A DNA stretch of 64,000 nt from Macrostomum lignano. Lineage: Eukaryota. This document shows, one piece after another, positions 481-46,778 of this stretch. Within the stretch, counting starts at the first letter, position 1. The number at the start of each line of letters is the position of its first letter. The notes below the pieces were generated by a model. The model was not told the DNA's origin and made no database searches. It saw only the letters and a program-made list of their open reading frames with translations. The translations under genes and the position numbers were made by a program. The stretch spans positions 1-64,000 of the forward strand of contig NIVC01003989.1 of NCBI GenBank assembly GCA_002269645.1, written 5' to 3'.

Positions 481-1875
481 CCGAATAAGCAAGGGACAAA
501 TTGAAACGGTTTTCCTAAATTTTCCTATTGTTACATATTAAATATCGTTTGTACTCACAAAAGTATTGCTATTATCTCTGCGATTCTTGGTTGCTATTAT
601 CTCTTTGTGATTTTTATTAGAATTATATAGCATAAAAATTACACATTTCATGCACATTTGTACAAAGCAATGTAACATCCGTAAGAATGCAGTATTAGTA
701 TTTAAACAAAGATAAATAGACTTGCCACACAGAAAGTAAGGTTTATCTGTGAAGAAATAAAAATGATAAGTTAAGGCATTTTTAAACAGTAACCTAGAGA
801 TTAGTCATTTTTTACATACACATTGGTTGATGACAACTCGCACTGAAATTAATTTGAGCCGAAAATTGTTGTTTTTATAATAATGCCCTACTATGACCAT
901 ACATACAGAATAAACTGCATGACGCGTACTAAAACGAACAATATTACGCCTGTTTTATCTGTTTTAAGGACCACTGCAGTGGTCCTTAAAACAGATTTTA
1001 TGAAAAGTTACAATGGCAAGAACAAATAGATGTTGCTTCTTGAATCTTGATTTAATACATATACATAAAAATCTTCAAAGTGTCTTTCACTTTACATATC
1101 AAATCTCCATTTTAAGTCAATTTAATAATTGATAAGCCTAGTAGCTAAATTCAGTGGTGACTGCAAATCGTACGAAAACTGATATCAGTAATGAAGGACT
1201 TAAAAGGGCCTCGATTATTTCTCACTGTTGACTGTTATCTTTTATTGGTTTTATAATTTCAAAAATGTGCAGCAGCAAAAGAATATTAATTGGTGTATTT
1301 TTATGGGAATATTATCCATTCAACAGCTCAATTTGACTTTATTGAATACATACTCATATCAACTATGCTGCTTTACTAATACATTGTTAAACAGTACCAC
1401 CAAAATGTTGAATTCGTCCATTTTCTCTGTCCTTATTTGATTGATTAGTCTACTTATAGATTATATTTTCCATAAAAAATACATACACCAAAATTTAAAG
1501 TCTTTATGCGATAATTAAGCTATCGCAGTCCATTCCTGCCAATACCAATAAAAGTGACTTCCAAAGTTATTACTTATTAGTAGTGTCCGAATCAGAATAA
1601 ACTATTAACACAAAAAATGCATGAGAAACAAAAAGTAAATTTCGGCAGTTTTGGCCAATAAATAAATAGAATTCTTGTGAACGAAGGCCGAAATGAAGAG
1701 TGAATTTCGTTAAATTACATTCACCAACAAGACAACTCCGAAATTTAGCACAATATTTCTTTGCACACATGCCTTGTATGATGTTCTTGCAAAAGGCTTA
1801 CCAACAAGATAGCCCATTGCACAATTTATATACATTTAATTATTTTTGTGATTTATTATATTTAATTATCTGTTT

Positions 1876-2294: not shown

Positions 2295-2894
2295 TCATTC
2301 TTCAACGACAGTGCTGCGGCTGCGGCTGCGGCTGCGGCTGCGGCGGCGAGGTAGGTCTCTGCATTCTGCCGCGATGTGGCCGCGCCGCAGGCAGAATCTG
2401 CAGAGTCCAACTGTGAAAAGAAAGCGATTAGATTTGTCAATATTAGTTTTGACGTATATTCACTTCACACGAAATGAGTGGTCAAACGAAAACTGATTTA
2501 GTCAAAACTACCCCTCTAAACAAACTCGTAATACAATTAACTTACGTGCGCGCATTTCGTCTCTCACAAATCGAGTTCTCGCCGAGCGCGAGAACAGCTG
2601 CAGTTGATGCTGCTGCTGTTGCTGTTGCTGTTGCGATTGTTGTTGTTGCTGTTGTTGTTGTTGCAGTTGTTGTTGCTGCTGTTGTTGTTGCTGCTCCTCT
2701 TGCTGTTGCTGCTGTTGCTGCATCGGCCAGGGTGCCGGTGGGAGAATGGGGGGTGGGTATGGGTTGGGATAGGGCATCCCAGTAGATGGGGGGGGATAAA
2801 ATACACCAGGAAATGGATAGGGATAGGGATAGGGATAGGGATACGGATAGGGATTGGGATAACTTAGGTAGGGATTACTTAGGTACGGATTCAT
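2295..2894 (-). CDS. ZK1: two-exon Pro/Tyr-rich + polyQ + CCHC zinc knuckle + RS-repeat protein (about 154 aa)
   Basis: Exon 1 2894-2546 ends GCAC|GTAAGT; exon 2 2410-2295 follows TTTCTTTTCACAG. The phase-1 splice joins in frame to give ...DEMRAL-GLCRFCLRRGHIAAECRDLPRRRSRSRSRSRSTVVEE*, a canonical CX2CX4HX4C. Confidence 0.8.
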
Positions 2895-3811
2895 AGTACT
2901 GGAAAAAAGACTGGCGTGGGCTTTTAAACTTATTTTTTATTTTGTTCGGGCGTATAGTGAAATTGTTAAGAACAGAGTTGGTTATATATACTATAGTGTA
3001 CAGTGGCCAAAACCAGATAATGGCTGGCTGATCCACCACCCCAAATTTGCTGTTTTTTCACCCCCAAATCTCTAGTTATCTCTAGCACTGATTGGCTCAC
3101 CCTGTCGGCTTTTGATTCCTGAGTTATTTCTAACCAATCACCTAACTCCCCAGCCCAGCCTAATAAGCCTATATTTTGTTTTCAGTGGACAATGAGGGTG
3201 AGACATCATACTTTAATCACCTCATTATTGATTTTATCTGGAGTCTCTCTACCTCTGTCGTGAAAATTTAGCTACAAAATGCACTTTTAAGTTTAAGTGT
3301 AAGTTTCAGTTTTGTTTTGTAAAAAATAACAAAAGTATTTGTTATTATATCTGTTAGTATTTGTTCTTGTAGTCCAAAAAATCAATAACTTTCCGCGGCA
3401 CGCGTAAACAGCCCAAATAAAGTAATTGCATGAAAAAAGTCTCAGCGATCCAGTTCGACCCAGCGGAGGGGTTGGCGCTGACTGCAGCCCCCAATCGACC
3501 CCAGCCTAAACCAGCGGACCAATCAGAGGCCACCAAAATTATAAAGGTGGCTAAAATTTACAAACAGGGGTGACTAAAAAATGAATAGAGTGGACGGTAA
3601 GAAAAAGGCTATAACAGAAAGTCGAGATGCTGACCAATCAGACGGCAGCGAGAAAATATTGAGAGTTGTTTTGGTACGAAGGGGTGGCTGCAGGGCTGCA
3701 ATATATAATAAAAACAAACTGCAAATGCAGTAAACTTTTCGCCTCAACTGTTTCAAGTCAAGCATCACTTTTATCTACTTTTAACTTAGATTCTTTAAGT
3801 AACGAAGAGAA
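2895..3811. promoter_or_regulatory. Putative bidirectional promoter between ZK1 and RPA-like-1
   Basis: Head-to-head genes, with several CCAAT/ATTGG boxes (about 3090, 3134, 3519, 3633). Confidence 0.5.
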
Positions 3812-5455
3812 ATGGAATCAAACCCTACGCCAGCCCAGAAGGTCAAATTCAGCATCTCTGCTCTTCTGCCCGGCTTGATGGATTCACCGGTCGTTGGTCT
3901 GATAACGAGACTGACAAAAATCCACGCCTACGAGAACAACAAAGCTGGATCAGGCCAAGTGTTCTCCTTCACTTTGACTGACGAGACTGCAGACATCAGA
4001 GTGAGCGTTTTTGGCAAGGACCTGAAGTCATTGCTGGAAATGTGCCAAACGGTCGAGACAGTGCGCATTTCTGGAGGCTGGATCAAAAAGGCTGACCCAA
4101 GGTACAACACTACGGAAAACGAGTATGAGATGAGCGTCTCAGTTGACAAAAGCGGCACCATCATGACTTCAAACGAGACGGTCAACAGGCGTTCCCGGGA
4201 CTACAGGAGGATATCGGAAATTTCTGCATGCCAAATGAAAACGTAAATATCTTGCACTTTATGCCTTTATTTTTTTTTATACATTTTCCTCGTGCTTTGC
4301 TTTACTTTAGGGTTAGGGTTAGGGTTAAGCTAGGGTTACGGTTAGAGTTAGGCTGAGGTTAGGGTTAAAAGCTTGACCGATTTTTTAAGATTTCAAGGCT
4401 TAATGGGGAGGGGGCATCGATGAGATGTCAAGGGGGGGAATTGATATGCTAAGGCTTGTGGGGGAATTGCTAACATGCCAAGGCTTACAAGGGACTGCTG
4501 AGGTATTGCAAAGAGACGCTACATGTAGTTTATTAAAAAACTTGTAATGCATTTTTTGGCTGCCCAACGGGGGGCGCTGATTGCTAGTCATTCAGCTAAA
4601 TTTGCCCTACTCAAAAACTTTCACCGTACGACAGGAAAGTTGACGTTCGTGGCATCATTTCTGCAGTTGAGAAGCCAAAGGAAGTAAAAACTGGTGCCGG
4701 AAAGCTCGTCGATTTAGCAAAAGTTACCATCGTTGATCGGTCCGGGTCCTCTGTGTCCTGCACTTTTTGGGCCAGTTCTTCTGCGCAGGTGAATAATTGG
4801 TCTATCGGCGACATTCTCGCGATTCATGGCTCTCAAGTCCAAGAGTACGCCCAGATGATAAGCCTCGGCTGTTCGCAAGCAGAAGTGCATCACTGGCCAG
4901 AAAATTCGCAAGAGTTCTCCGACCTAACCGAGTGGTACAACGGCGCCACAGCTAGCCAGCAGCATTTCGAGGCTGTGCGAGCGACACAGATTCCACCACC
5001 TGAGCAGCAAGCATCACATGATGAAGAAATGACATTACACTACCCGAACGAATGTTTCACCAGTTTAACAACATGCGAAGAATAAGACTGCGTTTCGGAA
5101 GCAAAGAGGTTAGTTTATTTCGAAAATGTTTGTTCACTTTAGTTTAATCAAAGGCAGTTATTATTGTATACTTCTTATGAGTGTTCACTTCAATTTAATC
5201 AAAGACAGTTATAATTATATACTTTTCAAACCGAATCCCACTTCACAGGTAACATTTTCACGAGATTCGAACAGCTGGAATCAGCAGATGCCCACAGGCT
5301 CTACACCTAGGCCTCTGTACACGAGTGACATGTCTCAGCAGAACAGCTGGAATCAGCAGGTACCCACAGGCTCTACACCTAGAACTCCGTACACTGGTGA
5401 CTCGAGCACTCGAAATCAAGAATTTTTGACATCACCAGCAGAAGATGAAGACTAA
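3812..5455 (+). CDS. RPA70-like ssDNA-binding protein 1 (two OB folds), 3 exons, one 1-nt frameshift
   Basis: Exons 3812-4242, 4635-5108, 5249-5455. GQVFSFTLTDETADIRVSVF...KKADPRYNTTENEYEM resembles RPA70 DBD-A; VDVRGII...VTIVDRSGSSVSCTFW...LAIHG resembles DBD-B. Exon 2 is 474 nt versus 475 in the paralogue (frameshift near 5045). Confidence 0.8.
4307..4587 (+). mobile_element. Degenerate (TTAGGG)n tract followed by a Helitron 3'-end fragment, inside intron 1 of RPA-like-1
   Basis: TTAGGG units 4307-4367, then GAGATGTCAAGG-type repeats like those at 53080-53800, then a CCCAACGGG hairpin and CTAG|T at 4584-4587. Confidence 0.65.
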
Positions 5456-8264: not shown

Positions 8265-11200
8265 TCAGTCTCGCAAGCACCGGTCGACGGCCTCCAAATC
8301 CTTCCGGTTTGTCATAGAAATCTCGTCCCAGACAATTAGATGCACTGTCCGAAATACAGCGGCCTGTTTGGACTGCGCTCCAACAGCGCACACGTCTTTG
8401 CTCGAACGGATCGCCCGAATTGGTATCTTGAACCTGGCATAGACAAATAGTTTCAGCATGCCGAACATATTTACAGCACACGAAATATTTACAACTGCTT
8501 TTTGAAATATTAACAATAAATTACTCACGTTGAATGCGCCGTCTGTCCACCTGGCAAAAGAGTCGCTGCGATTCCAGAAGCCGCAACGGCGAGGGCGACT
8601 TCACCCCGGCTGCGCACGAAGGCTAGCAGAACCTCTAGCAGGAAGGTCTTGCCAGTGCCAGCAGGTGCGTCCAGGAAGTGCAAGCCGCTGGTGCCGTCCA
8701 CAAGATTCTGAGTCACGGACTCGTACACCGCTTTCTGCTCATCTGTCAGCATTGGTAAGCGCGCCTCAGTAATCAGTGCCTGCTCAACCGTATCAAACTG
8801 CATTGGTCCATCTTGAGGTGTCACGGAGGCCGCAGGCAGGCCGTACTCTGGCAGGCTTCTCCCGCCCATGGAGATCAGCATGCTCTGAAGCTCACGCAGC
8901 GCCAGGTCAGTAATCTCCTCGGTGCTCAAGTCTCGGTGGTGAAACCGCAGGTCCTCGCTGAGATCCTCGGCAAAACTGCACCAGAGGTCGCTGCCATCCT
9001 CAGGCTCACCCCATATGAGAATTACGGCCAGAAGATGTCTCAGGGCTCTTGGCATTCTTGACTGAACGGCCTCAGCTAGACACCGCCGCCAGTGATCATC
9101 TCGCTGCAGCAGGCCAAGGGCCATGCAAGCAGCCTTGGCGCTCGGATGCACAACGCCGTCCACGGTCTGCAGCGCCTCGAAGCTAGTCGGTCCCCTAACA
9201 TTCAAAAGGAGCATTCGAACATAAAATAAATCACCTGCTCTTGGACTCACCGTGTACATGCGTGCAACGTTTTTGTTCCGCACTACACCCGGATGGCCAT
9301 CGACTCGCACACCCTGCTTGGCCCGCCGCCACTCTCTTTCGCTGGAGTGCCACACGAAGTAGGACGGCACCTCCGTGTAGAGCAAGGACCCAGCAAATTC
9401 GTCAATACGGCACAGCTTGAAAAATGCCGTCAAAGTCGAATCCTTCGGCGTTCTCGCTTTTGCTCTTGCGGTCCCCTCGTTGAAATACACGAGCTGCTCT
9501 TCCGACTTGTGAACGCAGAGTCGGATGACCGCCGGAAACCTGTTGTGCACCTGATCAGAAAGTGAAAGGAAAATATACAGCCTTTAAGTTTCGATGGAAA
9601 TTCAATTTATACTATGACGAGGTTTCACAGCTCTGGTTAAAATGAGCCAATAATAATTAGAATGCGAATTACTTCAAAGCCCAAGATGGTATTCACGGCT
9701 TCCATTGGACCAATGTAGCGCGCGGACAGGTACTCCTTAATCTCATCACGCCGCGGCTCATTTCGTGTCGTTTGCGTCGGCTGCTGGTTACCCACTGCCT
9801 GCTCTCTCGGTTCAGTAGAATTCCTATTGGCATCGACTTTGAACGTCGCCATGTCGCCACCCTTTAACAGGTACTTGATCACGTACTTGACCGACTTCAC
9901 AGTGGCGCAAACTTCGACGTTCAAGTGGCACGCAAACTGGAGCAACAGGTCAGGGCTGTACGGAACGACCCACCTGTTTTAATGAAAAAATAATATCATT
10001 AACTTTCAGAAACAAAAGCTGCAATGCACAACTAAGCAATATATTAGCGTTTGAACTTCCCTGTTGTCCATGCGAATGCTCCGGCCTTTGAACAGTTTGT
10101 CCACTGTAAATCCGCCCATCTCAGGCGATAGTCTGCGGTACAGTGGGTAGCCAGTATCGCTGGTCAGCGTCACCTGCTGGAACTCTTTCGGAAAGCCCTT
10201 GCTGCATTCGCCATTCTCCATGCAAGGACACGCCGGATTCTCCTTGCCGCAGGGGCCATGGATCATGTGCGTCTTCACCAGCTCATACAGCACAGGCTGC
10301 TGCTCTGGGTCCGGAATCTCGGCAGACACGATGTCATCGTATCGGTCCGGAGTCACTCGCTGACCGCTCACGAGCCACAGCAGAAAGTGCACATGAGGAA
10401 GACCTGGAGCGTCAAAAAAAGTATTAAAAAATATCACAAAACCTTTGTAAATCTAAATTTCAATAAATCTTAAAACTTTGATTCTTGCAAGTCAGAATTT
10501 TTACTCACCACGCTTCTGGTACTCCAGTGAGCAAACGTGAGCGGCCTCTTTCCCATAGCGCTTGGTCAACTGGGCCAGCAGAGCTTTCTTCTTCATTTCA
10601 AAGACTCGGCTAACAATGTCGGGCCGGTCTTCTGCCCGCTGTCCAGGCAGAAGCTGAGCGCTGATCTCCGGCCATTTCGGATTGCACGTTGCGGTGACAA
10701 ACAGGTCCGGCTTACCGAACTTGTGAACATAGGTCATAGCGTCCTGTAGCCTCTCCATCAGGTACCTTGGCCCGCCAACGAAGCTCGAAGACAGAAGCAC
10801 ATGCGCGGGCTTGCCTATGTCACTCGGATCTCTGTCGGTAGACCTGCCATCAGCTGCAAACAGAGCGTCCCGCAGACCGCTGTACGTCTCGCTGCGCAGG
10901 TCCTGCTGATGGGTCCGCAAATACAGCAGCCTCTCTGCCTCAATCTTGGCACACATGTCCACCAAGTACTGCTGAAATAATCTTCGGCCATAGTGCAGCA
11001 CACTGAACTGGCCCGCTCGCACCATGATTTCGCTCGCATAGTATTTCATGGGCGTCAATTTCTTGCCATTACTCATCAGCAACTCCGGGTGCCAGCCATC
11101 TTCGCCATTCGGGAACAGCAGCACATACTCCAGCGGGTCGTATGAGCGGTGCGTCTCGCTGATTCTCTGGGAACCGCCTCCACGCAGTTGAATCACCACG

Positions 11201-13330
11201 TCCCGACTGGCCGGTGTGTTCTCATTGTCCTCCACAATCAGGATACCGACCTCGTTCGCCGTAGGCAAGTTGTAGCGCCTTATTTTGAACGGAGTTTGTG
11301 GGATACTGAGTTTGTACAAATTGGATAATTTATTACGCAAAATATCTTATTAGAATGTCTTGCAGACATACCGAATGTGTTCCCCAGATGGTCGACGGTC
11401 AGGGTGAATCACGATTCGCGCATCTCCCAACTCCGGATCTTGACTGATTCGATGAGCGACTGCCCTCAGGCTGCGGACATAGCCGTTGCACTCGTGAAGC
11501 AGCGTCTGCAATAGCTCCAGTAGCTCCGGCTTCACCTTCTGGCTGAGACTCTGGCGGCTTTCAAGTTCGCGATCATTGAAATACACCTGCCAGCCATGGG
11601 GCTCAGCTGAATCCTCTGCAAACAGCGGCGCCGTGTTGTGATGCAACTGGCCGCTGATGATGAAGCTGGGACACCAGCCTGGCACCAACCGCAGTTTGGC
11701 ACCCAGCGATGTCAGGTGCAGCGCCGAGTTGTAACTCCGAATGTTGGTCAGGAACTCGGCACTCAGTCTGTGCCGCCCCAGGTACAGATCCGCCAGCACT
11801 TGAGGCACGGTGCGGCTGGGCAGCTTTACCTTGCCTTTGGCGCAGCAGAAATTCCTCGTCTCAGAGCACCAAAGTAATGCACCGCATTGGTCGCATGCTC
11901 TGTCCATTGGGCCACAGTTATGGGCTGGCGCTTCAGGCCTGATAATCCGTTCTGGCCTGTGATTGGAAGGATTAGGATTAGGAAGGATTAATGGCAAACA
12001 GTTTTCCCAGTTAATCTTTCAGTTTACAAAAAAATTTATTGGAATAAAACAACTTGAGTTCGATGACAAATAAATTATGATGACCAGTCACACCAATGAC
12101 CTACCTCTCTTGAGCAGGTCTTGCGCCAAAATGACCTGCACTCTGCTGAGTTAATCTTGGCTCCTCTGCATCTACAATGGGCTCAGAAACTGGAATCGGA
12201 TTAGCAAATCGCAATGACTCATAATGCTCATGACGCAAAAGAATTCGGACGATTGCAATCGGTGGCTGCAAAGGGGACATACAGTACTGCAGTACAGTGC
12301 CGTTTCTTGATAAATCACCAGATCAACATTAAAACAACGGCTTAAAAGCGGAACAACTTCATCAGGCACATATGTGCCTTCAGAAAAAGAGGAATCAACA
12401 ATGAAATCAGCATTTTCTGGCAAAACAAAGCCTTGTTCAATCAATTCTGGCATAATCTGCACTACACGGCTCGTCAGCTCGTGTCTTAAAGATGCCGCAT
12501 CGGTCTCAAGTGGAGTGCCCTGCAACTGATCACAGACTGCATGAAAAAAACAGTTCCCATCACCAGGAATGCGAATTATGCGCAACGCATCAAAAGGTAC
12601 CACAGACGGTGTGGCCAACTCACTACTATCAAACCTGGAATATAGGAAAAAAATTATACACAACTTCATTTGCCGGTAATTAAAGTAGTGACGAATAAAT
12701 TTTATGCTACTCTATACTGATCTCTTAAATAAAACTCTTGGAAAGCAATCGACTTGAAAAGATGAGAAAAAATGCACGAAACAGATTCCAGTTTTTAATT
12801 ATATGCCCAAGTACCAAAAAAACATCAGCTAAGATAGAAAATACCCCGAATTAGGCACAATGGGCACTTGGATTTTATATAGCTATAAAATATATAGCTC
12901 CAATTAAAATGTCATCCTACCTGCCAGCCGACACTCCTCGACGGCGAATTTGCTCGGCTTCCACTCGAGCTCTTCGTTGCTCTTCGGTTTCTGAAGCGCG
13001 TCGCTTCTCCGCACGAGTTCTGTCTCCAGATCTACGCTCTTCTCGCTGAGCCTCAGTTTCAGTTGCCCTTCGCTCAGCCTCCTGCTGCCGGTGTCCAGCC
13101 AGACGCTCTTCCCGCTTAGCCTCAGTTTCAGTTGCCCTTCGCTCAGCATTCTCCTGCCGGAGTCTTGTCAGACGCTCTTCTCGCTGAGACTCAGTTTCAG
13201 TTGCCCTTCGCTCAGCCTCCTGCTGCCGGTGTCCAGCCAGACGCTCTTCTCGCTGAACGGCACTCTCTTGCTGACGCTTCTTCTTGGCATCTCTGCTCTT
13301 CTTCAAAGCGCTGGTGCCACGTCGAGTCAT
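8265..13330 (-). pseudogene. Helitron H1 Rep/helicase polyprotein gene (STPR-like repeats, OTU, ZnF, Rep, Pif1), 3'-truncated
   Basis: Exons 13330-12921, 12634-12105, 11956-11372, 11278-10509, 10403-10061, 9973-9673, 9550-8529, 8436-8265. Motifs GDGNC...HEHY, FVTATCNPKW, EYQKRGLPHVH, KYVIKY, APAGTGKT, WDEISM. Lesions: frameshift near 12303, exon 5 donor GT>GG, deletion after CLRD, last helicase exon absent. Confidence 0.9.
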
Positions 13331-14744
13331 TTTGCAATTTGTATTTAAAAATAATAATTCAGAGTGATAATGAAAAGTAAAAATTATTAAGGCAATTTGC
13401 ACGAGAAAAGAGAAAGATTGAGAACTACATGCATTGACACGCTTTTTAAACTCAGCGAACCACACCACCCCAAAAAGCTAGACCACCCTCTTGTACGAGT
13501 ACACTGTTAAATATGTACATTGTGTACATTGTGTACACTAAGCCTAAGTTCTCTCCCCAACACCCTATGCTAATTGGTCAAGACTTTTTTAGCCTAGCCT
13601 AGTTTAATTAATTTAAATATCTGTTTCAGAAAAGGCTCAGTCCATTTGTGTAGCAATGTTGCATTCTGATTTGAATCGATATAAGAAATATATTATTTCT
13701 CTCTGTTTTGGGGGTTTGCGGGTGAATAATTTAGAATTTGGTTTGTTATCCTTTTACGCTCGTATTATTGTCAGTGTCAGTGTGCAGTGTACAGTGTTAG
13801 TGTATGTTATTATGGATGCCTTTACTTAGAAGCGATTCTAGCCAAGGTGAATTATAATTTATTGGGTGCATAGGTGGCGCATTCAATATTCACTTTCACT
13901 GGGTTAAAGTAGAAGTCACATGAAGCAGTTACGAAATTATTAATTTCTCAGTTTGCAAAAGCATGTTTTTCGAATATTTAATCCCTTTAGCATTGATACA
14001 TGTACCGTAAGAGGAAATTTCTGATCGAATGGGCTATCTCTTGTCAATTACACTGTGGCTCTTATAATTCAATTCTTTCACCATGTCAGTTAGAGTAAAA
14101 TTTATGACATAATCAATTTCTCAGTCAGCAAGCATCAATTTCAATTTCAATTTAAGTTAGCATTATGGTTACACAATTTCAATCGACTCTGATGCTATGC
14201 TTCCATATTGTTTTTTTAACACTGCGAGCCCAGTACACGGACAATAAATAAATACAATATGGTTATGCAATCTCAATCAAGTCTTGTGTGCTTTTCTTCG
14301 ACACTGTTTTCAACTTGTTGTGATGCAATCTTTATCACAATCGGAATTCAGCCAGTCAGTTTTTTCTCTAGCATTCTTACAATGCATTTCAGGTCGAAAG
14401 TTCTGCTTGACCTTTGCAAAAAAGCATGTTTTTCGAATATTTAATGCTTTAACATTGAGCAATTTCTTAGCCAGGATGCATGTACCGTCCCAGGAAAATT
14501 TCTGATCGAATGGTGCAAGTTTGAAGAAAATCGGTTGAGCCGTTTTTTCTGGAATCTATCTCACACATACACACAGACATTTCATTTTTAGTATATAGGA
14601 CTAGCAATCTTTGCCCCCCGATGGGGGACATCTGGATAGAACTTCTGTTCTCTACAAGTAAAAAAAACCGCCAAATAGAGTCTTCACAAAGACAACAGAA
14701 CAACTGCTCAAATGAAGCGCAATTCAAAAAGAAAACATCCCAAG

Positions 14745-14975
14745 ACAGCAAGCATCCCCCCTCCTCCCAGATAGCAAGCACCCCCAGATAGCAAGCACCC
14801 CCAGATAGCAAGCACCCCCAGATAGCAAGCACCCCCAGATAGCAAGCACTCCCAGATAGCAAGCACCCCCAGATAGCAAGCACCCCCAGATAGCAAGCAT
14901 CACTCAGATAGCAAGCACCCCAGATAGAAAGAACCCCCAGATAGCAAGTATCTATCCTTAAATAGCAAGCATCCA
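14745..14975. repeat. CCCCCAGATAGCAAGCAC minisatellite
   Basis: About 10 tandem units. Confidence 0.85.
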
Positions 14976-15049
14976 CCAGACAAAAAGTATATAGTGCAAC
15001 ATTTCCTTTTAGCTTTCTAGGGGCTCCTTTATGATTGGCATGACGCTTC

Positions 15050-21640: not shown

Positions 21641-23656
21641 TGCGCTTTTTTTATGTTTAGCAGTTTTTTTGATTTTAAGGTGTTTTAATAAAAAAATTAT
21701 TTTGCGCTTCTAAGATTCGAACCCAGGTCGCTACATTAGCATTCCAGTCTGTTCGCATCAGGGCTATCTCTTTTCAATTGGAGAACATGAATTGTGGCCC
21801 TTATAATTCAATTCTTACAGCAAGTCAATTGGAGTAAAAAGTTATGACATAATCAATTTCTCAGTCAGCCAGTATCAGTCTCACTTCAAGTTAGCAATAT
21901 GGTTACGCAATTTAAATCATGTCGTATGTGCATTTCTTCGGCACTGTTTTCAACTTGTTGTGATGCAATCTTTATCACAATCGGAATTCAGTCTGTCAGT
22001 TTTTTCTCTAGCATTCTTACATTGCATTTCAAGTCGAAAATTTGGCTTGACCTTTGCAAAAAAGCGTGTTTTTTCGAATATTTAATCCCTTTAACATTGA
22101 GCAATTTCTTAGTCAAGATGCATGTACTGTGCCAGGAAATTTTCTGATCGAATGGTGCAAGTTTGAAGAAAATCGGTTGAGCCATTTTTTCTGAAATCAA
22201 TCGCATACCCATATACATACATACATACAGACAACTCATTTTTAGTATATAGACTAGCTAAAGTTTTGCCCCCCTTCGGGGAGCAGAAATAATTAATATT
22301 CGTCTAATATAATATACCTTTTAGCAGGAGTACTTTAAGTGTCTTTCTTAAGCTTAAGCTTAAAATAGGAATTTTTGGAGATCGTTAATAACGCATTTTA
22401 GGTAAAACAAAACTATCAACTTTTTACAGTTTTTTAGTTTAGAGCCCTGTATATGTCAACGTGTTTGATAAAAATTATTTTATTTATTTAGTTTATAAAA
22501 CTGTTGAGATCACTTTTTTAGTTGTTACTGAAAATAAATTAAATAATATTCCAAGAAATTGCGACTTTCCGAGAAATGACTTGCTTTATTCCGATTTTCT
22601 TGTTGCTTGTATTGCTCATGTGTACTACAGTTTTATACACATCCCGAGAAATTTTTTACTTTCTTCATTTGTAAGTGAATTTCTTAGCCCTGCTCATCGT
22701 ACTAACTGCGACTGCAATGTTCCGAACAATAAGTAGCTCAGCATTGCAACTATTGCCCTTGAATGAGGCCCCTCTTATTATAATAAATGACTTAAAGAGT
22801 CAGTTCAATGCAGCTATCTCATTGTGAATGGACTTTGCAAAAGCAACTGGAGCTACATCCTTCGACCTTTGGTTTGACACTTTTAATAAAGCTAACATTG
22901 GCTATATATAGGCATGATATATGATATATATTATCATGCTAAATTCCCCCTTTCTTTTCTAGTCACACTCCTCAGCAGACTTCTCTTTTCTTATATGCCT
23001 CATTCACATTGTCAAATCTTATTTTGAATCAAATCCTATATGACATAAAAGTCTATTTCAAATTAGATCCATTTTGATAGTTCAAAATGGTTAGCTCATA
23101 TCAATGGCTAATTAAATATCAATGGATCAATTTCTAATCTCCTTTCTTTTTCTTAATGATTCCAGTTCTGATCAGATCCTATTTCTCATCTGACCTCTTT
23201 TCTTAGTAATCCATTTTGTATCATTCTTCATTTTAAATGCATGCCTGACAATTTATCTTTTAAAATAGAATAAGGCAGGTACCAGGTGTGCAGATTCATG
23301 AATCATGGGACTGGTCTTTGTCCACTGAAACATTTTTTGTATTTCTTCAATTGCAAAACACATTGAAAACAACAAAACAACAACAATTGAGTGAGCATCT
23401 GGCAAAATTATTATTATACAAATACATATCATTATGACATTATAAGAAAACAAACTCCAAATGTAGAGAATTCAGCGATTTTCCTCTTTCGTTTGTTAAA
23501 TTATTTTTTCGACAGAAACAAGTTGTGACTACTGAGTAATGTCAGAAAACGACAGTAATGGGACAGTAATGGGATTCAGTTCAATGAAAAAAGAAAAAAT
23601 TGCATTGCACCTAAAAATATTACCCACAAACAGTAAACATGATGCACTTGCAGAAG

Positions 23657-24084
23657 GCTCCGCCAACAAGACAGTATCATTGCACAGTTCATTGCATTTG
23701 ACTGCAAGAATAATGGTGTCAATCCTACTGCTTGTTGGCTTGCTTTACTCTGCACTGCTGGTCAGAGGCATTCACTGGGGCAAGTTAAGTTCACGCACTC
23801 AACGTCACACAAAAAGCTTAGCTATCACAAGTCTCTAGGTTTGCTGAAGCTGCTTCAAACCTCTCTCTCATGGCTGCATACCCTCAGTTTTAGAGTGGAA
23901 GAACCTCTGAATCGTGAAAAAGCAGCGAACACGTTATTTCAACCACAATCTCAAGGCCCATTGATATGCAGCCAACCTGCTATATATTCACCTAATATTT
24001 ACCTACATTAATTTCACTATTACTTATTAACTTTCATGGCACAACTAAATTGGGATCCGATTGTATCCGATCCTATTCTGGTTT
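23657..24084. repeat. About 430-bp direct repeat, copy 1 (copy 2 at 29101-29541)
   Basis: Near-identical sequence beginning GCTCCGCCAACAAGACAGTATC. Confidence 0.9.
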
Positions 24085-24089
24085 GCCTT

Positions 24090-24770
24090 GATCCCAATCT
24101 AGTTATGCAATGATCTCAATCTAGTTATGAAAGGATCTCAATTTAGTTATGCAATAATCCCATTTTAGTTACGCCAAATGATCCCAATTACGCTAAGCAA
24201 TGATCTTAGTTCTGTTATGCAATGAACCCAATTAGGCTAAGCAATGATCTCACTTCTGTTATGCCACAAACACAATTTAGCTAAGCAATGATCTCACTTC
24301 TGTTATGCCACAAACACAATTTAGCTATTGGGTTGGGAACCCAATTGGCTATTGGGAACCCAATCCGATCCTATTCTGGTTTGCCTTGATCCCAACTCGT
24401 AGCAGAAAATTTTCATTACCTTACGGACGCCCCTCTTACTAATCATAATTCTGGTAAACTATGAATCCAATTTTCCATTCTTCAATGATCCCATTCGTAT
24501 CATGCCATGAGCCCAATTTCATTATGCGATAATTCCAATTCTGGTTTGCTATGATCCCAATTTAGTATGCAAGGATCCCAACTTAGTTATGCCAAATGAT
24601 CCCAATTACGCTAAGCAATGATCTTAGTTCTGTTATGCAATGAACCCAATTAGGCTAAGCAATGATCTCACTTCTGTTATGCCACAAACACAATTTAGCT
24701 AAGCAATGATCTCACTTCTGTTATGCCACAAACACAATTTAGCTAAGCAATGATTTAGGATTGATATATA
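24090..24770. repeat. About 44-bp degenerate minisatellite (GCTAAGCAATGATCTCACTTCTGTTATG...)
   Basis: Tandem units; also present at 25750-25920 and 29580-29645. Confidence 0.75.
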
Positions 24771-24786
24771 AGATTCTGTGAATTTA

Positions 24787-25377
24787 CCCAATTGGAATAA
24801 ATGTTGAAAACCCGCGGACGCGCGCTTTAGAATAGAGTCAAATTATTTTCCCGCGCTTTAGGATTATTAGAGATGTCCCAAAAGAGCAGTTTCCTCAAAA
24901 TAAAAATTCGTTAACTTTCCAAACTCAAAATTGAAATTTTCCGAAATCAAAATGCAGAAAAACAAAGTTTAGTATGACCAATACTCACTTTTTACATTCG
25001 ATTTACTGTTTATGCAAAATGAAATACATGTATATGTAGCAGAAATTGGTATATATTTAGTGATTTTTTAGACGCTTCCAAATTTTGACTTCTAATTTTA
25101 TTCAAAATTGAAATTTGCTCTTAAAAAAATTCTAATTTTGGAAAATTCAAATTGAAATTTCGGAACATCTCTAAGCTTTATAAATTATAAGTGTATAGGC
25201 CCCTTCCACAGAGGTATTAGATGACCCATTTCCATGCATATTTATTTGCTAGAACAGCAGCCAGCAAGAAAAGGCAGCGCACGCAGGCGCTGCGCGCCTG
25301 TGCGCACGCCGCGCTTTAGAACAATTTCAAAAGTGCGCCGGACGCCGTCCACGGATTTACAACTTTTTCCTATAGGG
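24787..25377. mobile_element. 591-bp non-autonomous TIR element with an 8-bp TSD
   Basis: TGAATTTA at 24779-24786 and 25378-25385; imperfect TIRs of about 33 bp starting CCC; the duplicated region near 29670 shows the empty site. Confidence 0.8.
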
Positions 25378-25750
25378 TGAATTTAGGATTGGGATCTAAG
25401 AGATTCTATGAATTTAGGATTGGGATCTAAGAGATTCTATGAATTTAGGATTGGGATTTAAGAGATTCTATGAATTTAGGATTGGAATCTAATAGATTCT
25501 GTGAATTTAGCATTGGGATCTAAGAGATTCTGTGAATTTAGGATTGGGATCTAAGAGATTCTAAGAATTTAGCATTGGGATCTAAGAGATTCTATGAATT
25601 TAGGATTGGGATCTAAGAGATTCTGTGAATTTAGGATTGGGATCTAAGAGATCCATGAATTTAGGATTGGGATCTAAGAGATTCTATGAATTTAGGATTG
25701 GGATCTAAGAGATTCTGTGAATTTAGGATTGGGATCTAAGAGATTCTGTG
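25378..25750. repeat. 31-bp satellite (GAATTTAGGATTGGGATCTAAGAGATTCTAT), short array
   Basis: Tandem units. Confidence 0.9.
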
Positions 25751-26144
25751 AACCCAATGAACAAGCAATGAACCCAATTTAGCTAAGCAATGCTCTCAGT
25801 TCTGTAATGCCATAAACCCAATTTAACTAAGCAATGATCTCAGTTCTGTTATGCAATGAACCCAATTTCGCTAAGCAATGATCTCAGTTCTGTTATGCAA
25901 TGAACACAATTTAGCTAATCATTTTGCTTAGCTAATCACTGATCCCAATTCCATTATGATCCCATCTAATTTTAATTTATTAGGTGAATAAAGCAGGATT
26001 TACCTGATACGTCTCATCGGGCCGTATTATACATATCAGGTTAAACTACTTGTGATGGCTATCGAACTCAGATGCGCTACTGGCAGACAAAAATGCACTC
26101 AAGCATTACTCACGTTAATTGCATCTTTATTAGTCTTTCAAGTC

Positions 26145-27553
26145 CTACTCGTCCATGAAATAATGTGATGGCCCAGGCTTCTCGGACACATTGGGAGCCT
26201 TAGGGGTTGACATAGCGGGGATCTGCTGACTTCTGTTGATATGATCTCGGGAAAATGTCACCTGTGAAATGAAATTTATATATGAATTTAATCAATTTTT
26301 TATATTCATATTACTCTTGAATGAATGAATAAACCTAATCTTTAGAGATAAGAGGCCTCATTGAACAAGTTAATAATGAATCTAAGCAGTCAATCACTTA
26401 TTGCTTCTTTAGTACGTTCTCTGACACCATATTTCTATTTAACCCACACGTAATACTCGTAAAATCAACTTACCTCTTTGTCCCCAAATCGCACTTTAAT
26501 TCTTCGCACCTCATCGAATTGGTCGAACATTCGCTCTGGGTACTGTAATACCATTTCGTCGTCACGGTTAGCATATTTCTCCCGCTGGGAGCTTTGCGTC
26601 ACCCGTAGCTCCTCGAAGCACTGTTGGCTAGAAAGCGCATCCTTGTACCACTGGGTAATGTCGGAGACATCAGCAGAGTCTTCTGGCCAATGCTGAATTT
26701 CCGCTTTCGAACATCCGAGACTGATTGTCTGGGAATATTCCTGGACTTGAGCACCATGAATCGCTAGAACGTCGCCCACAGACCAGTCATTCACTTGGGC
26801 AGTAGAGCTGGCCCAAAATGTGCACGACACGGAGGACCCAGACTGATCAACAAGCGTCACTTTCGCCAGGTTGATAAGTTTTCCGGAACCGGTTTTAACT
26901 TCCGTTGGTTTCTGGACAGCAGAAATCGTGCCATAGACGTTAACATTCCTGAGATATGTGAGGCAAAGGGTGAACTTACAAGAATGCATTAACTCATTCA
27001 CTAAGCAACTTCACTGACTGATTTAAATAAGTTTCCCTAGAAATAATTGGCTAACCTAACATTTAGTGGGAATATATATTCCAAATCCTTTCCATTTTAT
27101 TTTTAACAATTGCAACAAGTTAACTTACATTTTCATTTCACAGTCCGAAATCTCTTTTATCTTCTTATAGCTTGGTGCACGTCGAGTGACGGTCTCGAGG
27201 GTCCTCACAATGGTTCCACGTTGGTCAATTGAAACTGTTAGCTCGTGCTCATTGTCCGTAGTGCTGTATTTGGGATCCGCCTTCTTCACCCAGCCGCCGG
27301 ATATGCGGACGGCGACGCCCTCACGACACACCTCCAGGAAAGGCTTAAGATCCTTTCCGAACACGCTTACACGTATATCGCCGGTGTCGTCACAGAGGAT
27401 AAAGGAAAACACTTGGCCTGGTCCTCTTTTGCCTTCAAAGTCCGTGATTTTGGACAGCCTCATTACGAGGCCAACGATTGCAGCGTGCATCAGGCCCGGA
27501 AGCAGAGCAGAGATACACGCTTTGCTTTTCTTGGCTCCTTCGGTTGACTCCAT
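26145..27553 (-). CDS. RPA70-like ssDNA-binding protein 2 (two OB folds, 338 aa, intact)
   Basis: Exons 27553-27129, 26948-26474, 26261-26145 sum to 1017 nt with GT-AG sites and the same phases as RPA-like-1; OB-A and OB-B motifs present. Confidence 0.85.
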
Positions 27554-28370
27554 ATTGCTCGATTGATAGTTGCCAAAAATATGGATTATAAAAATTTCAC
27601 TGATAAGGTCTTTACGGTTTGTGGTTTGATAGTTTTAGCATCAAGGCCAATTGTGCCAGTTTATATTGCAGCATTTCGTTTCGGACAACCCTAACTGTGA
27701 TGACTCATGCCAATAGAGGGTGCCATGTAAAGATCAATTTAGATCTGGCTAACCAATCAGAGAGAGTTTTGTTCTAATCCACCCACTGGGCTACTTGTTG
27801 TGGATTGGCTGGTGATTGCCTTAGCTTTTACGTTCTTTCTTTATGTACACTGTGTGGGGTGTCAGAGTCGAGTGTGGTGCGACTTGTTATGCAATCTGTT
27901 TTCGACACACTTCAATAATAGGACACAAAAAATATCTTAAATGTACACTGTAATTGGGAAGCCAGTGCGGCGTGTGGCTAACGTGGCTAAAAATAGAGGG
28001 TTTCAAGTCAGCCAATAGCAGTAAACTTTGTATTCAACTAAAGTGATTTCATTAAACTGCCAGTGCAAGCCCCAACCTAGTGCGACTTTTCAGTAATCAC
28101 AAACAGCTAAAGCCTCATGACGCTCACCAATGAAGCCTCACACGATTTTAACTGGGGTTGGGGGTGGCCCTAAGCTGGTATTCATTTTTGCCTAAGCTGA
28201 AACGGGCTTTAAAAAAATGAAATGAGTTTCATTTCCTTAGCAAGGTTTTCAAACCAATCTCGCTAATCCTTGCTTGACATGAGTGAGCGTATATAAACCA
28301 GAGTGAGCGTACGACACGCTCGTATAATTTCCACTGTATAGTTCCACTGTTTAACTCCACTGTTCCACAA
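27554..28370. promoter_or_regulatory. Putative bidirectional promoter between RPA-like-2 and ZK2
   Basis: Head-to-head genes, with multiple CCAAT boxes (about 27752, 27805, 28012, 28127). Confidence 0.5.
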
Positions 28371-28612
28371 ATGAAGTTTACCCAGAACTTCTTTTCCGGC
28401 GGCGGCAGGCGGCGAGGAGGCCGCGGTGGTGGACACCCTAGAAAACCTAGTAAGTCTCATTTCTAAGTCTCATTACTGTAATTAAGTCTTTCGAAACCAC
28501 CTGTTGAGTAAAATTGCACTTTCCAAACTTAACAGTGGCCTGTTATCTCTGCGGTGGAGGTCACCCTGTGGCCCGGTGTCCGGACCTGGCCGACATGCGG
28601 CTGCAGCAGCAG

Positions 28613-28656
<44 letters not shown>

Positions 28657-28660
28657 GCAA

Positions 28661-28695
<35 letters not shown>

Positions 28696-28726
28696 GCCGC
28701 AGCAGCAGCAGCAGCGGAATAATTAA
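28371..28726 (+). CDS. ZK2: two-exon RGG + zinc knuckle + polyQ protein (about 89 aa)
   Basis: Exon 1 28371-28449 (MKFTQNFFSGGGRRRGGRGGGHPRKP, A|GTAAGT); exon 2 28536-28726 after CTTAACAG gives MACYLCGGGHPVARCPDLADMRLQ(n); AATAAA downstream. Confidence 0.75.
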
Positions 28727-29100
28727 ATTCAATTTGTTTGTGGAATTAACTTGATATGATTTCTTGATTTTTTTATTTATGTGTTTGAGAATTTAAAGAA
28801 TTCTAAATAAATAAAATAAATAATTCTGTTTACTGAATAAATAAGTGTTTCGTGTTGCTTTTTCTTACTCCTAAATGAAAATAAGAAACTTAACTGACAC
28901 AGCTCATTGCTATGATCAATTTAGAACCTAAAATGAAGTTTTGGAGCTTAATTGAAAGTTTTTAACTAAACAAACATCCATATGAAAGTATGCAAAATAA
29001 CATATTATAAATAAGGGAATTCAATGACAACTGATGAGTTTAATAATTGCTTTGTGAATACTTACTTACAAAGACAGTAGAGATGATGAATTCGCAGATT

Positions 29101-29541
29101 GCTCCGCCAACAAGACAGTATCATTGCACAGTTCATTGCATTTGACTGCAAGAATAATGGTGTCAATCCTACTGCTTGTTGGCTTGCTTTACTCTGCACT
29201 GCTGGTCAGAGGCATTCACTGGGGCAAGTTAAGTTCACGCACTCAACGTCACACAAAAAGCTTAGCTATCACAAGTCTCTAGGTTTGCTGAAGCTGCTTC
29301 AAACCTCTCTCTCATGGCTGCATACCCTCAGTTTTAGAGTGGAAGAACCTCTGAATCGTGAAAAAGCAGCGAACACGTTATTTCAACCACAATCTCAAGG
29401 CCCATTGATATGCAGCCAACCTGCTATATATTCACCTAATATTTACCTACATTAATTTCACTATTACTTATTAACTTTCATGGCACAACTAAATTGGGAT
29501 CCGATTGTATCCGATCCTATTCTGGTTTGCCTTGATCCCAA
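29101..29541. repeat. About 430-bp direct repeat, copy 2
   Basis: Matches 23657-24084. Confidence 0.9.
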
Positions 29542-29649
29542 TTTAGTATGCAAGGATCCCAACTTAGTTATGCCAAATGATCCCAATTACGCTAAGCAAT
29601 GATCTTAGTTCTGTTATGCAATGAACCCAATTAGGCTAAGCAATGATCT

Positions 29650-30870
29650 AGGATTGATATATAAGATTCTGTGAATTTAGGATTGGGATCTAAGAGATTC
29701 TATGAATTTAGGATTGGGATCTAAGAGATTCTATGAATTTAGGATTGGGATTTAAGAGATTCTATGAATTTAGGATTGGAATCTAATAGATTCTGTGAAT
29801 TTAGCATTGGGATCTAAGAGATTCTGTGAATTTAGGATTGGGATCTAAGAGATTCTATGAATTTAGGATTGGGATCTAAGAGATTCTAAGAATTTAGGAT
29901 TGGGATATAAGAGATTCTATGAATTTAGGATTGGGATCTAAGAGATTCTCTGAATTTAGCATTGGGATCTAAGAGATTCTGTGAATTTAGGATTGGGATC
30001 TAAGAGATTCTAAGAATTTAGCATTGGGATCTAAGAGATTCTATGAATTTAGGATTGGGATCTAAGAGATTCTGTGAATTTAGGATTGTGATCTAAGAGA
30101 TCCCATGAATTTAGGATTGGGATCTAAGAGATTCTATGAATTTAGGATTGGGATCTAAGAGATCCCATGAATTTAGGATTGGGATCTAAGAGACTCTGTG
30201 AATTTAGGATTGGGATCTAAGAGATTCTATGAATTTAGGATTGGGATCTAATAGATTCAATGAGATTAGGATTGGGATCTAAGAGATTCAATGAATTTAG
30301 GATTGGGATATAAGAGATTCTGTGAATTTAGGATTGGGATCTAAGAGATTCTGTGAATTTAGGATTGGGATCTAAGAGATTCTGTGAATTTAGGATTGGG
30401 ATCTAAGAGATTCAATGAATTTAGGATTGGGATCTAAGAGATTCTATGAGATTAGGATTGGGATCTAAGAGATTCTATGAGATTAGGATTGGGATCTAAG
30501 AGATTCTATGAATTTAGGATTGGGATATAAGAGATTCTATGAATTTAGGATTGGGATCTAAGAGATTCTGTGAATTTAGGATTGGGATCTAAGAGATTCT
30601 ATGAATTTAGGATTGGGATCAAAGAGATTCTGTGAATTTAGGATTGGGATCTAAGAGATTCTATGAATTTAGGATTGGGATATAAGAGATTCTATGAATT
30701 TAGGATTGGGATCTAAGAGATTCTGTGAATTTAGGATTGGGATTCAAGAGATTCTATGAATTTAGGATTGGAATCTAAGAGATTCTGTGAATTTAGCATT
30801 GGGATCTAAGAGATTCTATGAATTTAGCATTGGGATCTAAGAGATTCTATGAATTTAGGATTGGGATCTG
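29650..30870. repeat. 31-bp satellite, long array (about 1.2 kb)
   Basis: Period of 31 bp visible (e.g. AGGATTGGGA at 30361 and 30392). Confidence 0.95.
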
Positions 30871-31129
30871 TTATGCTCAGTTCTGTTATGCAATGAACCC
30901 AATTTAGCTAATCATTTTGCCTAGGTAATCCCTGATCTCAATTCCATTATGATCCCATCTAATTTGAATTTATTAGGTGAATAAAGCAGGATTTGCCTGA
31001 TATGTCTCAGCGGGCCATTTACATATCAGGATAAACTACTTGTGATCACTATTAAACACAGATACCAATGCGACACTCACAGACAAAATGACACAAGTAA
31101 TACTCACTTCAATGACGCCTGGAAATCGC

Positions 31130-37100: not shown

Positions 37101-37454
37101 CTCTGCCTCAGTCTCAGCCTCTCTGCGCTGAGCGTCCCGCTGCCGCTGTTCTTCCAGTCGGGCAGCCCACTCTGCCTCAGTCTCAGCATCTCTGCGCTGA
37201 GCATTCCGCTGCCGCTGTTCTTCCAGTCGGGCAGCTCGCTCTGCCTCAGTCTCAGCATGTCTGCGCTGAGCATCCCGCTGCCGCTGTTCTTCCAGTCGGG
37301 CATCCCGCTCTGCCTCAGTCTCAGCATGTCTGCGCTGAGCATCCCGCTGCCGCTGTTCTTCCAGTCGGGCATCCCGCTCTGCCTCGGATTCTGCCTGTCG
37401 CCGTCGCTTGGCATCGCGGCTCTTCTTTAAACTGCTGGCGCCGCGTCGAACCAT
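31130..37454 (-). CDS. Helitron H2 Rep/helicase polyprotein (STPR-like repeats, OTU, ZnF, HUH Rep, Pif1 helicase), about 1740 aa, 9 exons
   Basis: Exons 37454-37045, 36857-36273, 36197-35614, 35475-34679, 34421-34079, 33883-33565, 33481-32460, 32376-31980, 31894-31130. All phases are consistent if one G is restored near 35622. All three Rep motifs and the Pif1 motifs through TIHKAQGQSL and HGQLYTALSRA are present. Confidence 0.9.
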
Positions 37455-41258: not shown

Positions 41259-42650
41259 ATGAAAATTCTTGATGTAAGAAATTGCACGAAGCTAACGACT
41301 CCCTTGCGGGGAAAAATTCTGGTTCGGAATGAGGTGAGCTGCACTTTTAGTTTCTTCGCTTACTTTTGCACAATAGTCAATTAAATGCACAATAGTCAAG
41401 AAAACAATACTACTGTAATTTGTAGGTGAAAATCAACTCAAAAATTTTTCCTGACCCCACATTTGTTTAGATTCGGTCCTACTCAAACCGTAGTGGCCCC
41501 GGCACTTTGTTCTCGGCCCTTCTGATCGACGAGACAGCTGAGATCAAAGTGTGTTTTTTCGGACGTAACCTTAACGATTCGTGGCAGAAGTGTACCGAGG
41601 GGAACGCTGTAAACCTTCACGGCGTTGAAGTGAAGACAGCGGATCAGCGCTACAACTTTGCTGAGAACCTTTTCGAGCTAAATGTCAATGTCGACAAAGG
41701 TGGTTTCGTTGAAGAAGCGGAAGACTTCGTGTGTTCACCGCACTACAGATTCCACCCGATATCAGAGCTAGCCACAATCGGGACTAATGGGTGAGAATTC
41801 TTATGTCAAAATTATATTCTTATGTCTATATCTATAACTCTATCTATCTATCCATCTATCCATCTATCCGTCTATCCATCTAGCTATCTATCCACTTCTC
41901 AATATGTCTTACCCATTTATCTATTCAAGATTTGACTTTGAACCCCATTTCTGATCCTAGCGTTCGCGTCGACTTGCTGGGGGTAGTAATATCGACTGCT
42001 GGTCCGACCGACGTCCAGACAAGAAATGGTCCTACGCAAAGGACTGGCGTTGTCTTGGCAGACAACAGTGACCGTACAGTCCTCTGTACGTTCTGGGGAC
42101 GGCGAGCCGTTCAGGTGTCCTCGTGGCACATCAATTCTATTGTGGCAATCAAGGGGGCGTGAACAAGTGACTACGATGTCCTCTCGCTTAGTTGCTCCTC
42201 CGTCTATTGTGTCCTGGATCCCGACGGAGTTGACCTCAGTGAGCTGCAAAAATGGCGTGAGGAACGAGCAGCCAAAGAATTGATGCCCGTTGCTGCCTCT
42301 CGCCAGCCGCAGATCGACGATGCGATTTGCATCGACGTGCCCAGCAGCGTCAAACGGGTCCGCATCCGTCGGGGAAATATCGAGGTAAGGCTCAATATTT
42401 AACTCAATTCAATTTAGTATGCATGCTCTTCCTGTCATAGCCAACAGAACCAGCTTCTTCACAAAACTTACAGAGGACGATCGATCTCAACGATTTGGAG
42501 CCACAGAGTTCACAGTGAGTAATCGAATACTTTCATGCCGTTAGAATTTGCGTTGCGGGTATCAAGGAGCTACAATATAAAAATTTTAACGAATCACAAA
42601 TCGTACTTGCAGACAAAGCGACACGTCATTCTCCTCTCAGTGAACGATGT
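41259..42650 (+). pseudogene. RPA70-like gene 3 (divergent; one in-frame TGA)
   Basis: Exons 41259-41333, 41471-41790, 41961-42384 plus short tail exons. IRSYSNRSGPGTLFSALLIDETAEIKVCFFG (OB-A) and VDLLGVV...VLCTFWG...VAIKGA (OB-B); the frame stays open past the TGA at 42160-42162 to the conserved KRVRIRRGNIE|GT. Confidence 0.75.
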
Positions 42651-45786: not shown

Positions 45787-46754
<968 letters not shown>

Positions 46755-46778
46755 TGCTGATGCTGCTGCTGATGCTGC

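Follow-up and report, generated by a model that had tools for sequence, protein, structure and literature searches.

Spliced zinc-knuckle genes paired with RPA-like genes: candidate accessory genes of Macrostomum Helitrons

The first 64,000 nucleotides (nt) of contig NIVC01003989.1 of the flatworm Macrostomum lignano (assembly GCA_002269645.1), here called the window, contain three small genes, ZK1, ZK2 and ZK3, each of which combines a polyglutamine (polyQ) tract with a CCHC-type zinc-knuckle motif and lies near an RPA-like gene. The same window holds two copies, H1 and H2, of the Rep-helicase (Rep/Hel) gene of Helitrons, transposons that move via single-stranded and circular intermediates (PMC6431247). 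Helitrons carry Rep/Hel, and some lineages carry RPA-like, OTU or endonuclease functions in addition; RPA in particular has been described (PMC6431247, PMC5148889). The literature searched contains no report of a zinc-knuckle or CCHC accessory gene in Helitrons, and nothing on the Helitrons of Macrostomum. We consider it quite likely that ZK is a real, selected and Helitron-linked gene. With less assurance, at slightly better than an even chance, we read it as a lineage-specific accessory gene of Macrostomum Helitrons whose product may bind single-stranded nucleic acid together with the RPA-like protein.

ZK1 and ZK2 are intact and encode predicted products of 154 and 89 amino acids (aa), and ZK3, which is of the ZK1 type, is a broken copy (Table 1). 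An earlier reading of the letters alone, the original prediction, had proposed three small genes here; all of them are present at those loci, the two splice junctions that it named (2546/2410 in ZK1 and 28449/28536 in ZK2) are exact, and the phase-1 GT-AG intron that it assigned to all three genes is borne out. The introns measure 135 nt in ZK1 (GTAAGT...CACAG), 86 nt in ZK2 (GTAAGT...AACAG) and 191 nt in ZK3 (GTAAGT...ACAG). A GTAAGT donor that fits at six of six positions, a YAG acceptor and phase 1 are found together in all four known ZK copies, that is, these three and a homologue on an independent contig, L001. It had further been claimed that the intron ends one to two codons before the first Cys, which is true of ZK2, where this Cys lies two codons past the split codon, but not of ZK1 and ZK3, where it lies three codons past it. 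Unspliced exon 1 reaches a stop within a few codons, so the knuckle is joined to exon 1 by splicing only, in every copy.

The order of parts differs between the predicted proteins ZK1 and ZK2. In ZK1, a PY-rich segment is followed by polyQ, a basic stretch, the knuckle CRFCLRRGHIAAEC (CX2CX4HX4C) and Arg-Ser (RS) repeats. In ZK2, an R/G-rich exon 1 precedes the motif CYLCGGGHPVARC (CX2CX3HX4C), and polyQ comes last. ZK3 follows the layout of ZK1, with polyQ, basic stretch, phase-1 intron and a knuckle in which four of four ligand positions are occupied, and ends in an Ala/Thr-rich tail. A LINE-like (long interspersed nuclear element-like) element with an RNase H match and reverse-transcriptase-like open reading frames (ORFs) adjoins ZK3, its (GA)n tail abutting the polyQ-coding part. 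This element probably cut off the 5' end of ZK3; the missing 5' part was sought beyond it and was not found. The pairing of polyQ with a CCHC knuckle, as first proposed, holds for all three loci as far as the presence of the motif is concerned, with canonical spacing in ZK1 and ZK3 but non-canonical spacing in ZK2.

In a six-frame scan of the window, CX2CX4HX4C was found twice, in ZK1 and ZK3, against 0.18 occurrences expected, and CX2CX3HX4C once, in ZK2, against 0.22 expected. The six frames contain exactly three Q-rich tracts, and one of them lies beside each ZK motif.

Evidence that the motif is maintained comes from outside the assembly. The N-terminal ORF of the RPA-like gene beside ZK2 (RPA2) has a single relative in a collection of 5.8 billion clustered proteins, and this relative is on L001, a 2.7-kb Logan contig from run SRR24204725. 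On L001, a gene of the ZK2 type stands head-to-head with the RPA gene, 866 bp apart. It has an R-rich exon 1 starting MK..N.F, a 97-nt phase-1 GTAAGT...AG intron, the motif CYLCAGPHPVRRC, and polyQ at the contig end. The two RPA proteins are 50% identical, and neither the introns nor the intergenic DNA of ZK2 and L001 can be aligned. Over the 20 codons that begin with the first Cys, 4 are identical, 10 differ synonymously only and 6 change the residue; the synonymous-only codons include those of all four zinc ligands. The original prediction had called for a comparison of nonsynonymous (dN) and synonymous (dS) change on the knuckle codons, and over these 20 codons dN is 0.29, dS is saturated and the Cys and His residues are retained. 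Such a pattern is typical of a translated sequence under purifying selection. We regard this codon pattern as the strongest single argument that ZK is probably a real gene.

A second line of evidence is the arrangement of each ZK gene with its neighbour. Promoter and poly(A) signals of the ZK and RPA-like genes were read from the sequence as consensus matches. The CCAAT box of ZK1 lies about 100 nt upstream of its TATA box, and that of ZK2 about 35 nt upstream; past the stop codons, an AATAAA follows at about 120 nt in ZK1 (near 2172-2177) and AATAAA signals at about 80 nt in ZK2. A separate TATA box, within the common word GCTGCAATATA, precedes the start of the RPA-like neighbour by about 105 nt. 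As each gene has its own TATA box, ZK and RPA make up a divergent pair, and the 0.8-0.9 kb of intergenic DNA holds two core promoters. ZK1 and RPA1 stand head-to-head in H1, 918 bp from start codon to start codon, as do ZK2 and RPA2 in H2, with 818 bp between them. When the intergenic DNA of H1, H2 and L001 was compared, no similarity was found except the short promoter words. ZK3 and the remnant RPA3 are arranged tail-to-tail at a distance of 3.4 kb; the DNA around them is rearranged and has neither Rep/Hel nor a hairpin nearby. Between them lies an inverted repeat of two 320-bp arms, 99.4% identical and separated by a 119-bp spacer, which could represent a foldback element or an artefact of the assembly. 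Among the RPA-like genes, RPA1 is closest to RPA2 (61% identical), and RPA3 is 33-37% identical to both at the aa level.

The Helitron nature of the surrounding DNA is clear from the H2 ORFs, which match Helitron_like_N (4e-46) and PIF1 (1e-32), as well as Pif1_2B and UvrD_C_2, in Pfam, the domain content of a Helitron Rep-helicase. H1 is about 79% identical to H2 at the nt level and is broken by one large deletion, through which the C-terminal helicase part was lost. STPR-like repeats of 69 bp and an OTU-like domain stand at the start of both copies. A helicase ORF of the window is 88% identical to the M. lignano protein BOX15_Mlig024103g1, and positions 8268-13255 of H1 are 98.2% identical at the nt level over 5 kb to contig NIVC01000958.1 of the same assembly (L002). 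No endonuclease match was obtained among the scanned ORFs, and the Rep/Hel frame of H2 ends after UvrD_C_2, where a tandem repeat begins. The literature splits RPA, found in Helitrons, from OTU plus endonuclease, found in Helentrons. An AP-endonuclease after the helicase is a Helentron feature that H2 does not have; the Rep/Hel genes at 31130-37454 and 8268-13468 combine OTU-like domain, STPR-like repeats and a nearby RPA-like gene, without endonuclease.

Table 1. Features of the window, with the ZK genes first; positions count from the first nucleotide of the window.
Feature	Position	Strand	Remarks
ZK1 gene, start to stop codon	2295..2894	-	Intact; exon 1 2894-2546; intron 2545-2411; exon 2 2410-2295
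ZK1 core promoter	2983..3095	-	TATA TATATATA at 2990-2983, about 90 nt upstream of ATG; CCAAT at 3095-3091
ZK2 gene	28371..28726	+	Intact; exon 1 28371-28449; intron 28450-28535; exon 2 28536-28726
ZK2 core promoter	28254..28297	+	CCAAT at 28254-28258; TATA TATATAAA at 28290-28297, about 75 nt upstream of ATG
ZK3, broken copy of ZK1 type	45787..46362	-	One in-frame stop; start codon absent
RPA1, RPA-like, two OB folds	3812..5114	+	Matched parts without in-frame stops
RPA2, RPA-like, two OB folds	26465..27553	-	Matched parts without in-frame stops
RPA3, divergent RPA-like remnant	41471..42387	+	One in-frame stop; N-terminal part undetected
H1 Rep/Hel gene	8268..13468	-	STPR-like repeats, OTU-like, Rep, helicase
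H2 Rep/Hel gene	31130..37454	-	STPR-like repeats, OTU-like, Helitron_like_N, PIF1 helicase, Pif1_2B, UvrD_C_2
3' segment, copy 1 (tail, 31-bp tandem repeat, X)	29057..31113	-	Between Rep/Hel and ZK2; hairpin 29190-29082
3' segment, copy 2	23616..26119	-	Downstream of RPA2; hairpin 23746-23638
Hairpin remnant (right arm and tail)	1777..1849	-	Downstream of ZK1; nhmmer E=3e-4
21-bp tandem repeat, 30 copies	6622-7248		Between RPA1 and H1 Rep/Hel remnant
23-bp-unit satellite, 6.6 kb, about 286 copies	15077-21636		Between H1 and H2
Repeat with 17/18-bp minisatellite CCCAGATAGCAAGCAYC	1-477, 14255-14980, 21731-22281, 38606-40146		Flanks each Helitron copy on both sides
320-bp inverted repeat	44721-45040 and 45160-45479		Between RPA3 and ZK3
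LINE-like element	46363-49868	-	
LTR-retrotransposon integrase-like ORFs	60191-61502	-	By ORF reading alone; tested ORF without Pfam match at E<=0.001

The 3' ends of the two copies place the ZK genes relative to the element. In H2, a 3' segment of 2-2.5 kb follows both Rep/Hel and RPA2, so that ZK2 and RPA2 lie between two 3' ends. A hairpin whose stem measures about 85 nt is present in both segments, and behind it comes a short tail that is conserved. The same hairpin is present on the contig of a distant relative, L009 (5414-5525), about 0.7 kb downstream of the helicase, where the stem is kept via compensatory changes; ZK2 and RPA2 are thus upstream of a hairpin that is conserved in this relative. 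We interpret the long hairpin as subterminal to the 3' end in this Helitron group, the ends of which it could mark. In H1, a hairpin remnant lies downstream of ZK1, with a patch of the 23-bp satellite (1874-2008) between them, and ZK1 and RPA1 are enclosed by the Rep/Hel gene on one side and the satellite and hairpin remnant on the other. Taken together, a link of the ZK genes to Helitrons is supported in so far as each of the three has an RPA-like gene nearby and ZK1 and ZK2 are situated between Rep/Hel and a 3' hairpin, but the association is not constant, as shown by L002 and by a related family described below. Several repeats accompany these copies. Several reading frames are open across the 21-bp tandem repeat at 6622-7248, and the 23-bp satellite occurs downstream of the Helitron copy on L002 as well (11936-12762). 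The repeat with the 17/18-bp minisatellite may be part of the end regions of the element or of the context of insertion.

L002, despite its 98% identical Rep/Hel, differs from H1 in exactly the part that is of interest here. Relative to L002, H1 has about 5.4 kb extra between a segment common to both and the 23-bp satellite, and this extra DNA holds a tandem repeat, RPA1 and ZK1. A single insertion, about 4.7 kb long, splits the L002 helicase. In the related family (L003-L008, contigs from Logan runs SRR316284xx), the helicase is 82% identical at the aa level and RPA follows directly after Rep/Hel on the same strand; the RPA-like gene of L003, for example, lies at 5736-6835. L009, the helicase of which is 56% identical at the aa level, has neither RPA nor ZK but retains the 3' hairpin. 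A scan with the RPA profile gave four distant OB-fold loci in JGI metagenome contigs, all of them without knuckle or polyQ, and no loci in IMG/VR. Because the ZK module is absent from L002 and from the contigs of the related family, it is dispensable for at least some copies.

These comparisons lead to the best surviving alternative, which is that the ZK-RPA pair is a separate non-autonomous Helitron-type unit, or a read-through product, that shares the 3' end of Rep/Hel. We consider this a serious possibility, though one that falls short of an even chance. It would account for the position of the ZK2-RPA2 pair between the two 3' segments of H2 (29057-31113 and 23616-26119), for the orientation of the pair, which in H1 (2295-5114) is inverted relative to Rep/Hel and the 3' hairpin when compared with H2 (26465-28726), and for L002, in which a 98% identical Rep/Hel occurs without the pair. 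Nevertheless, no 5' terminus was recognised between the first hairpin and ZK2, and duplication of the 3' segment within the element would produce the same arrangement. In the L003 family, moreover, RPA follows Rep/Hel directly on one contig.

Whether the ZK genes form one family, as the original prediction supposed, can be answered in part. Type A (ZK1 and ZK3) has polyQ before the knuckle, canonical spacing and the first Cys three codons past the split codon. Type B (ZK2 and L001) has an R/G-rich exon 1, short spacing, polyQ after the knuckle and the first Cys two codons past the split codon. The two types have in common the phase and position of the intron, the ligand pattern and the place near RPA, and a short Asp-Leu follows the last Cys in both ZK1 and ZK2. 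The single-family view is favoured by these shared features and qualified by the two architectures, which are otherwise little alike. From the sequence features, a common origin of both types is probable; either the low-complexity parts were renewed at great speed while the knuckle exon was conserved, or the one ZK type took the place of the other.

It is important to note the observations that weigh against ZK as a knuckle-bearing accessory gene of these Helitrons. ZK type and RPA similarity do not go together, since RPA1 is nearest to RPA2 while the architectures of ZK1 and ZK2 differ, and homology of types A and B is therefore no more than probable. The spacing CX2CX3HX4C, although kept between ZK2 and L001, is one residue short of canonical in the stretch from second Cys to His, and such a motif might or might not adopt the knuckle fold. 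The Pfam zf-CCHC profile (PF00098) gives 12.8 bits (E=0.14) on ZK1, under the gathering cut-off of 20.8, no match on ZK2 at E<=1 and none on ZK3 exon 2 at E<=0.001. On L002, the RPA-like and ZK genes are absent within 10 kb, and the knuckle motif is absent from the L003-L008 contigs. L001 is the only external ZK example found. Finally, neither a 5' end of the element nor an empty site was found in the copy comparisons. Homology between copies ends near the hairpin. Termini are recognised in Helitron1 by TC...CTRR in AT, and in Helitron2 by asymmetric terminal inverted repeats.

Searches for relatives bear on a further alternative, according to which a Helitron captured a host gene, or part of one, and ZK is this passenger, now decaying and without a role in the element. 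ZK1, with its polyQ masked by X, gave no credible match among the 5.8 billion clustered proteins, which include the M. lignano proteins of NCBI (best E=0.02, on 8% of the query), and ZK2 exon 2 gave zero matches among 1.84 billion representatives. Exact look-ups of the ZK1 exon-1 ORF and the RPA1 ORF returned nothing on record. As no homologue appears in these protein collections, there is no visible host parent and no annotated or transcript-derived ZK product. Host genes are known to be captured by Helitrons (PMC6431247), ZK3 is broken, the module is absent from some copies and the protein is mostly simple-repeat sequence, all of which would suit a passenger. However, both collections failed to reveal a host parent; promoter, splice sites, frame and zinc ligands are kept even though the RPA genes are only 50-61% identical; and the turnover at the ligand codons is synonymous, with the position next to RPA constant. 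A passenger origin is accordingly improbable in our judgement.

In our preferred account of ZK as an accessory gene, ZK would be a small RNA polymerase II unit, transcribed divergently from the RPA-like gene, with a promoter of CCAAT and TATA boxes, a single phase-1 intron and a poly(A) signal. Its predicted product would be almost wholly of low complexity, with polyQ and PY, RS or R/G segments derived from fast-turnover simple repeats; the exception would be one CCHC-type zinc knuckle, which is probably the part under selection. Binding of single-stranded nucleic acid is an established property of CCHC knuckles that have basic flanks. The knuckle of ZK, with its flanking Arg-rich segment, may do the same, in the manner of the nucleocapsid (NC) knuckles of retroelements. 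ZK could then join the RPA-like protein in handling either the single-stranded DNA intermediate that arises in rolling-circle transposition or the transcripts of the element, and the polyQ/PY segments might provide self-association. This combination of binding to a single-stranded intermediate or element RNA, partnership with RPA and self-association is a tentative proposal, which we would put somewhat below an even chance. The chaperone, condensate and anti-silencing roles that the original prediction named are conjectural and would rest on analogy.

The same parts can be weighed differently. ZK might act mainly via its polyQ, PY, RGG or RS segments, by forming condensates or by interfering with silencing or RNA processing, and it is true that a large share of each ZK product is of low complexity. 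The knuckle and RS repeats of ZK1 recall the C-terminal half of SRSF7-type SR proteins. Yet conservation is lowest in the low-complexity parts, which are of different kinds and follow a different order in ZK1 and in ZK2, and no RRM or other domain was matched in Pfam; we hold this alternative to be slightly less probable still than a passenger. Very improbable is the view of ZK as a remnant of gag or nucleocapsid from a long terminal repeat (LTR) retrotransposon, or as a pattern that arose by chance in simple-repeat DNA: the window does contain retroelements, and retroviral NC knuckles give the best, though weak, matches, but gag/capsid similarity and LTR context are lacking, the ZK genes have their own promoters and introns, the motif is kept on the independent contig L001, and the motif counts and co-location with Q-rich tracts, far above chance, rule out a chance pattern. 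The remnant of gag was rejected on the ground that no gag context was found. The original prediction had named host genes or LTR gag fragments as the homologues that would count against it, and neither a close host parent nor a gag context has come to light.

If ZK indeed works together with RPA, it would be a second single-stranded nucleic-acid-binding accessory factor for rolling-circle transposons. A bolder version, which we think rather unlikely, is that a Helitron lineage has evolved its own nucleocapsid-like knuckle protein, co-regulated with RPA from divergent promoters and coating or chaperoning the single-stranded DNA of the element, possibly as part of a partner unit distinct from Rep/Hel. 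If true, it would be a DNA-transposon counterpart of retroelement NC that arose independently. In practical terms, ZK could serve, if conserved, as a sequence marker for this flatworm Helitron group, and it illustrates how short spliced genes made of simple repeats escape both ORF-based and profile-based annotation.

Among known systems, the closest likeness is with the NC knuckles of retroviruses and LTR retrotransposons. ZK1 and ZK3 likewise have CX2CX4HX4C with Gly-His and basic flanks, and when the knuckle region of ZK1 was compared with solved structures, the best matches were retroviral nucleocapsid knuckles, at weak scores (E=0.015-0.6). In contrast to NC, ZK bears only one knuckle, lacks capsid and gag domains, and is an independent spliced gene in a DNA transposon. 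The usual setting of such a knuckle, at the C-terminus of a gag polyprotein in an LTR or LINE unit, is not found here, and Pfam gave no gag match. SRSF7-type SR proteins share with ZK1 exon 2 a CCHC knuckle followed by Arg-Ser repeats, a likeness that serves as a lead only. SR proteins of this type have an N-terminal RRM, whereas ZK is without an RRM match (Pfam E<=1); ZK2, ZK3 and L001 lack the RS stretch, and no SR protein appeared among the ZK homologue and solved-structure matches. We therefore do not file ZK as a member of the zf-CCHC, Gag/NC or SR groups, though by analogy it resembles NC in its likely working.

Within Helitrons, ZK may be compared with the RPA-like accessory genes and with an extra ORF of fungal elements. 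Like RPA, ZK would be a non-transposase accessory gene that accompanies Rep/Hel, and by analogy an affinity for single-stranded nucleic acid would be expected of it; the RPA-like proteins have an OB fold, whereas ZK has none and is a mostly disordered product of 89-154 aa. The FoHeli3 Helitrons of Fusarium oxysporum carry an extra ORF of opposite orientation with no significant domain match (PMC5148889). Compared by description only, this ORF and ZK are both additional, Helitron-only ORFs in opposite orientation without a significant domain match, but the FoHeli3 ORF belongs to another kingdom and is reported without a zinc knuckle, polyQ or an RPA partner.

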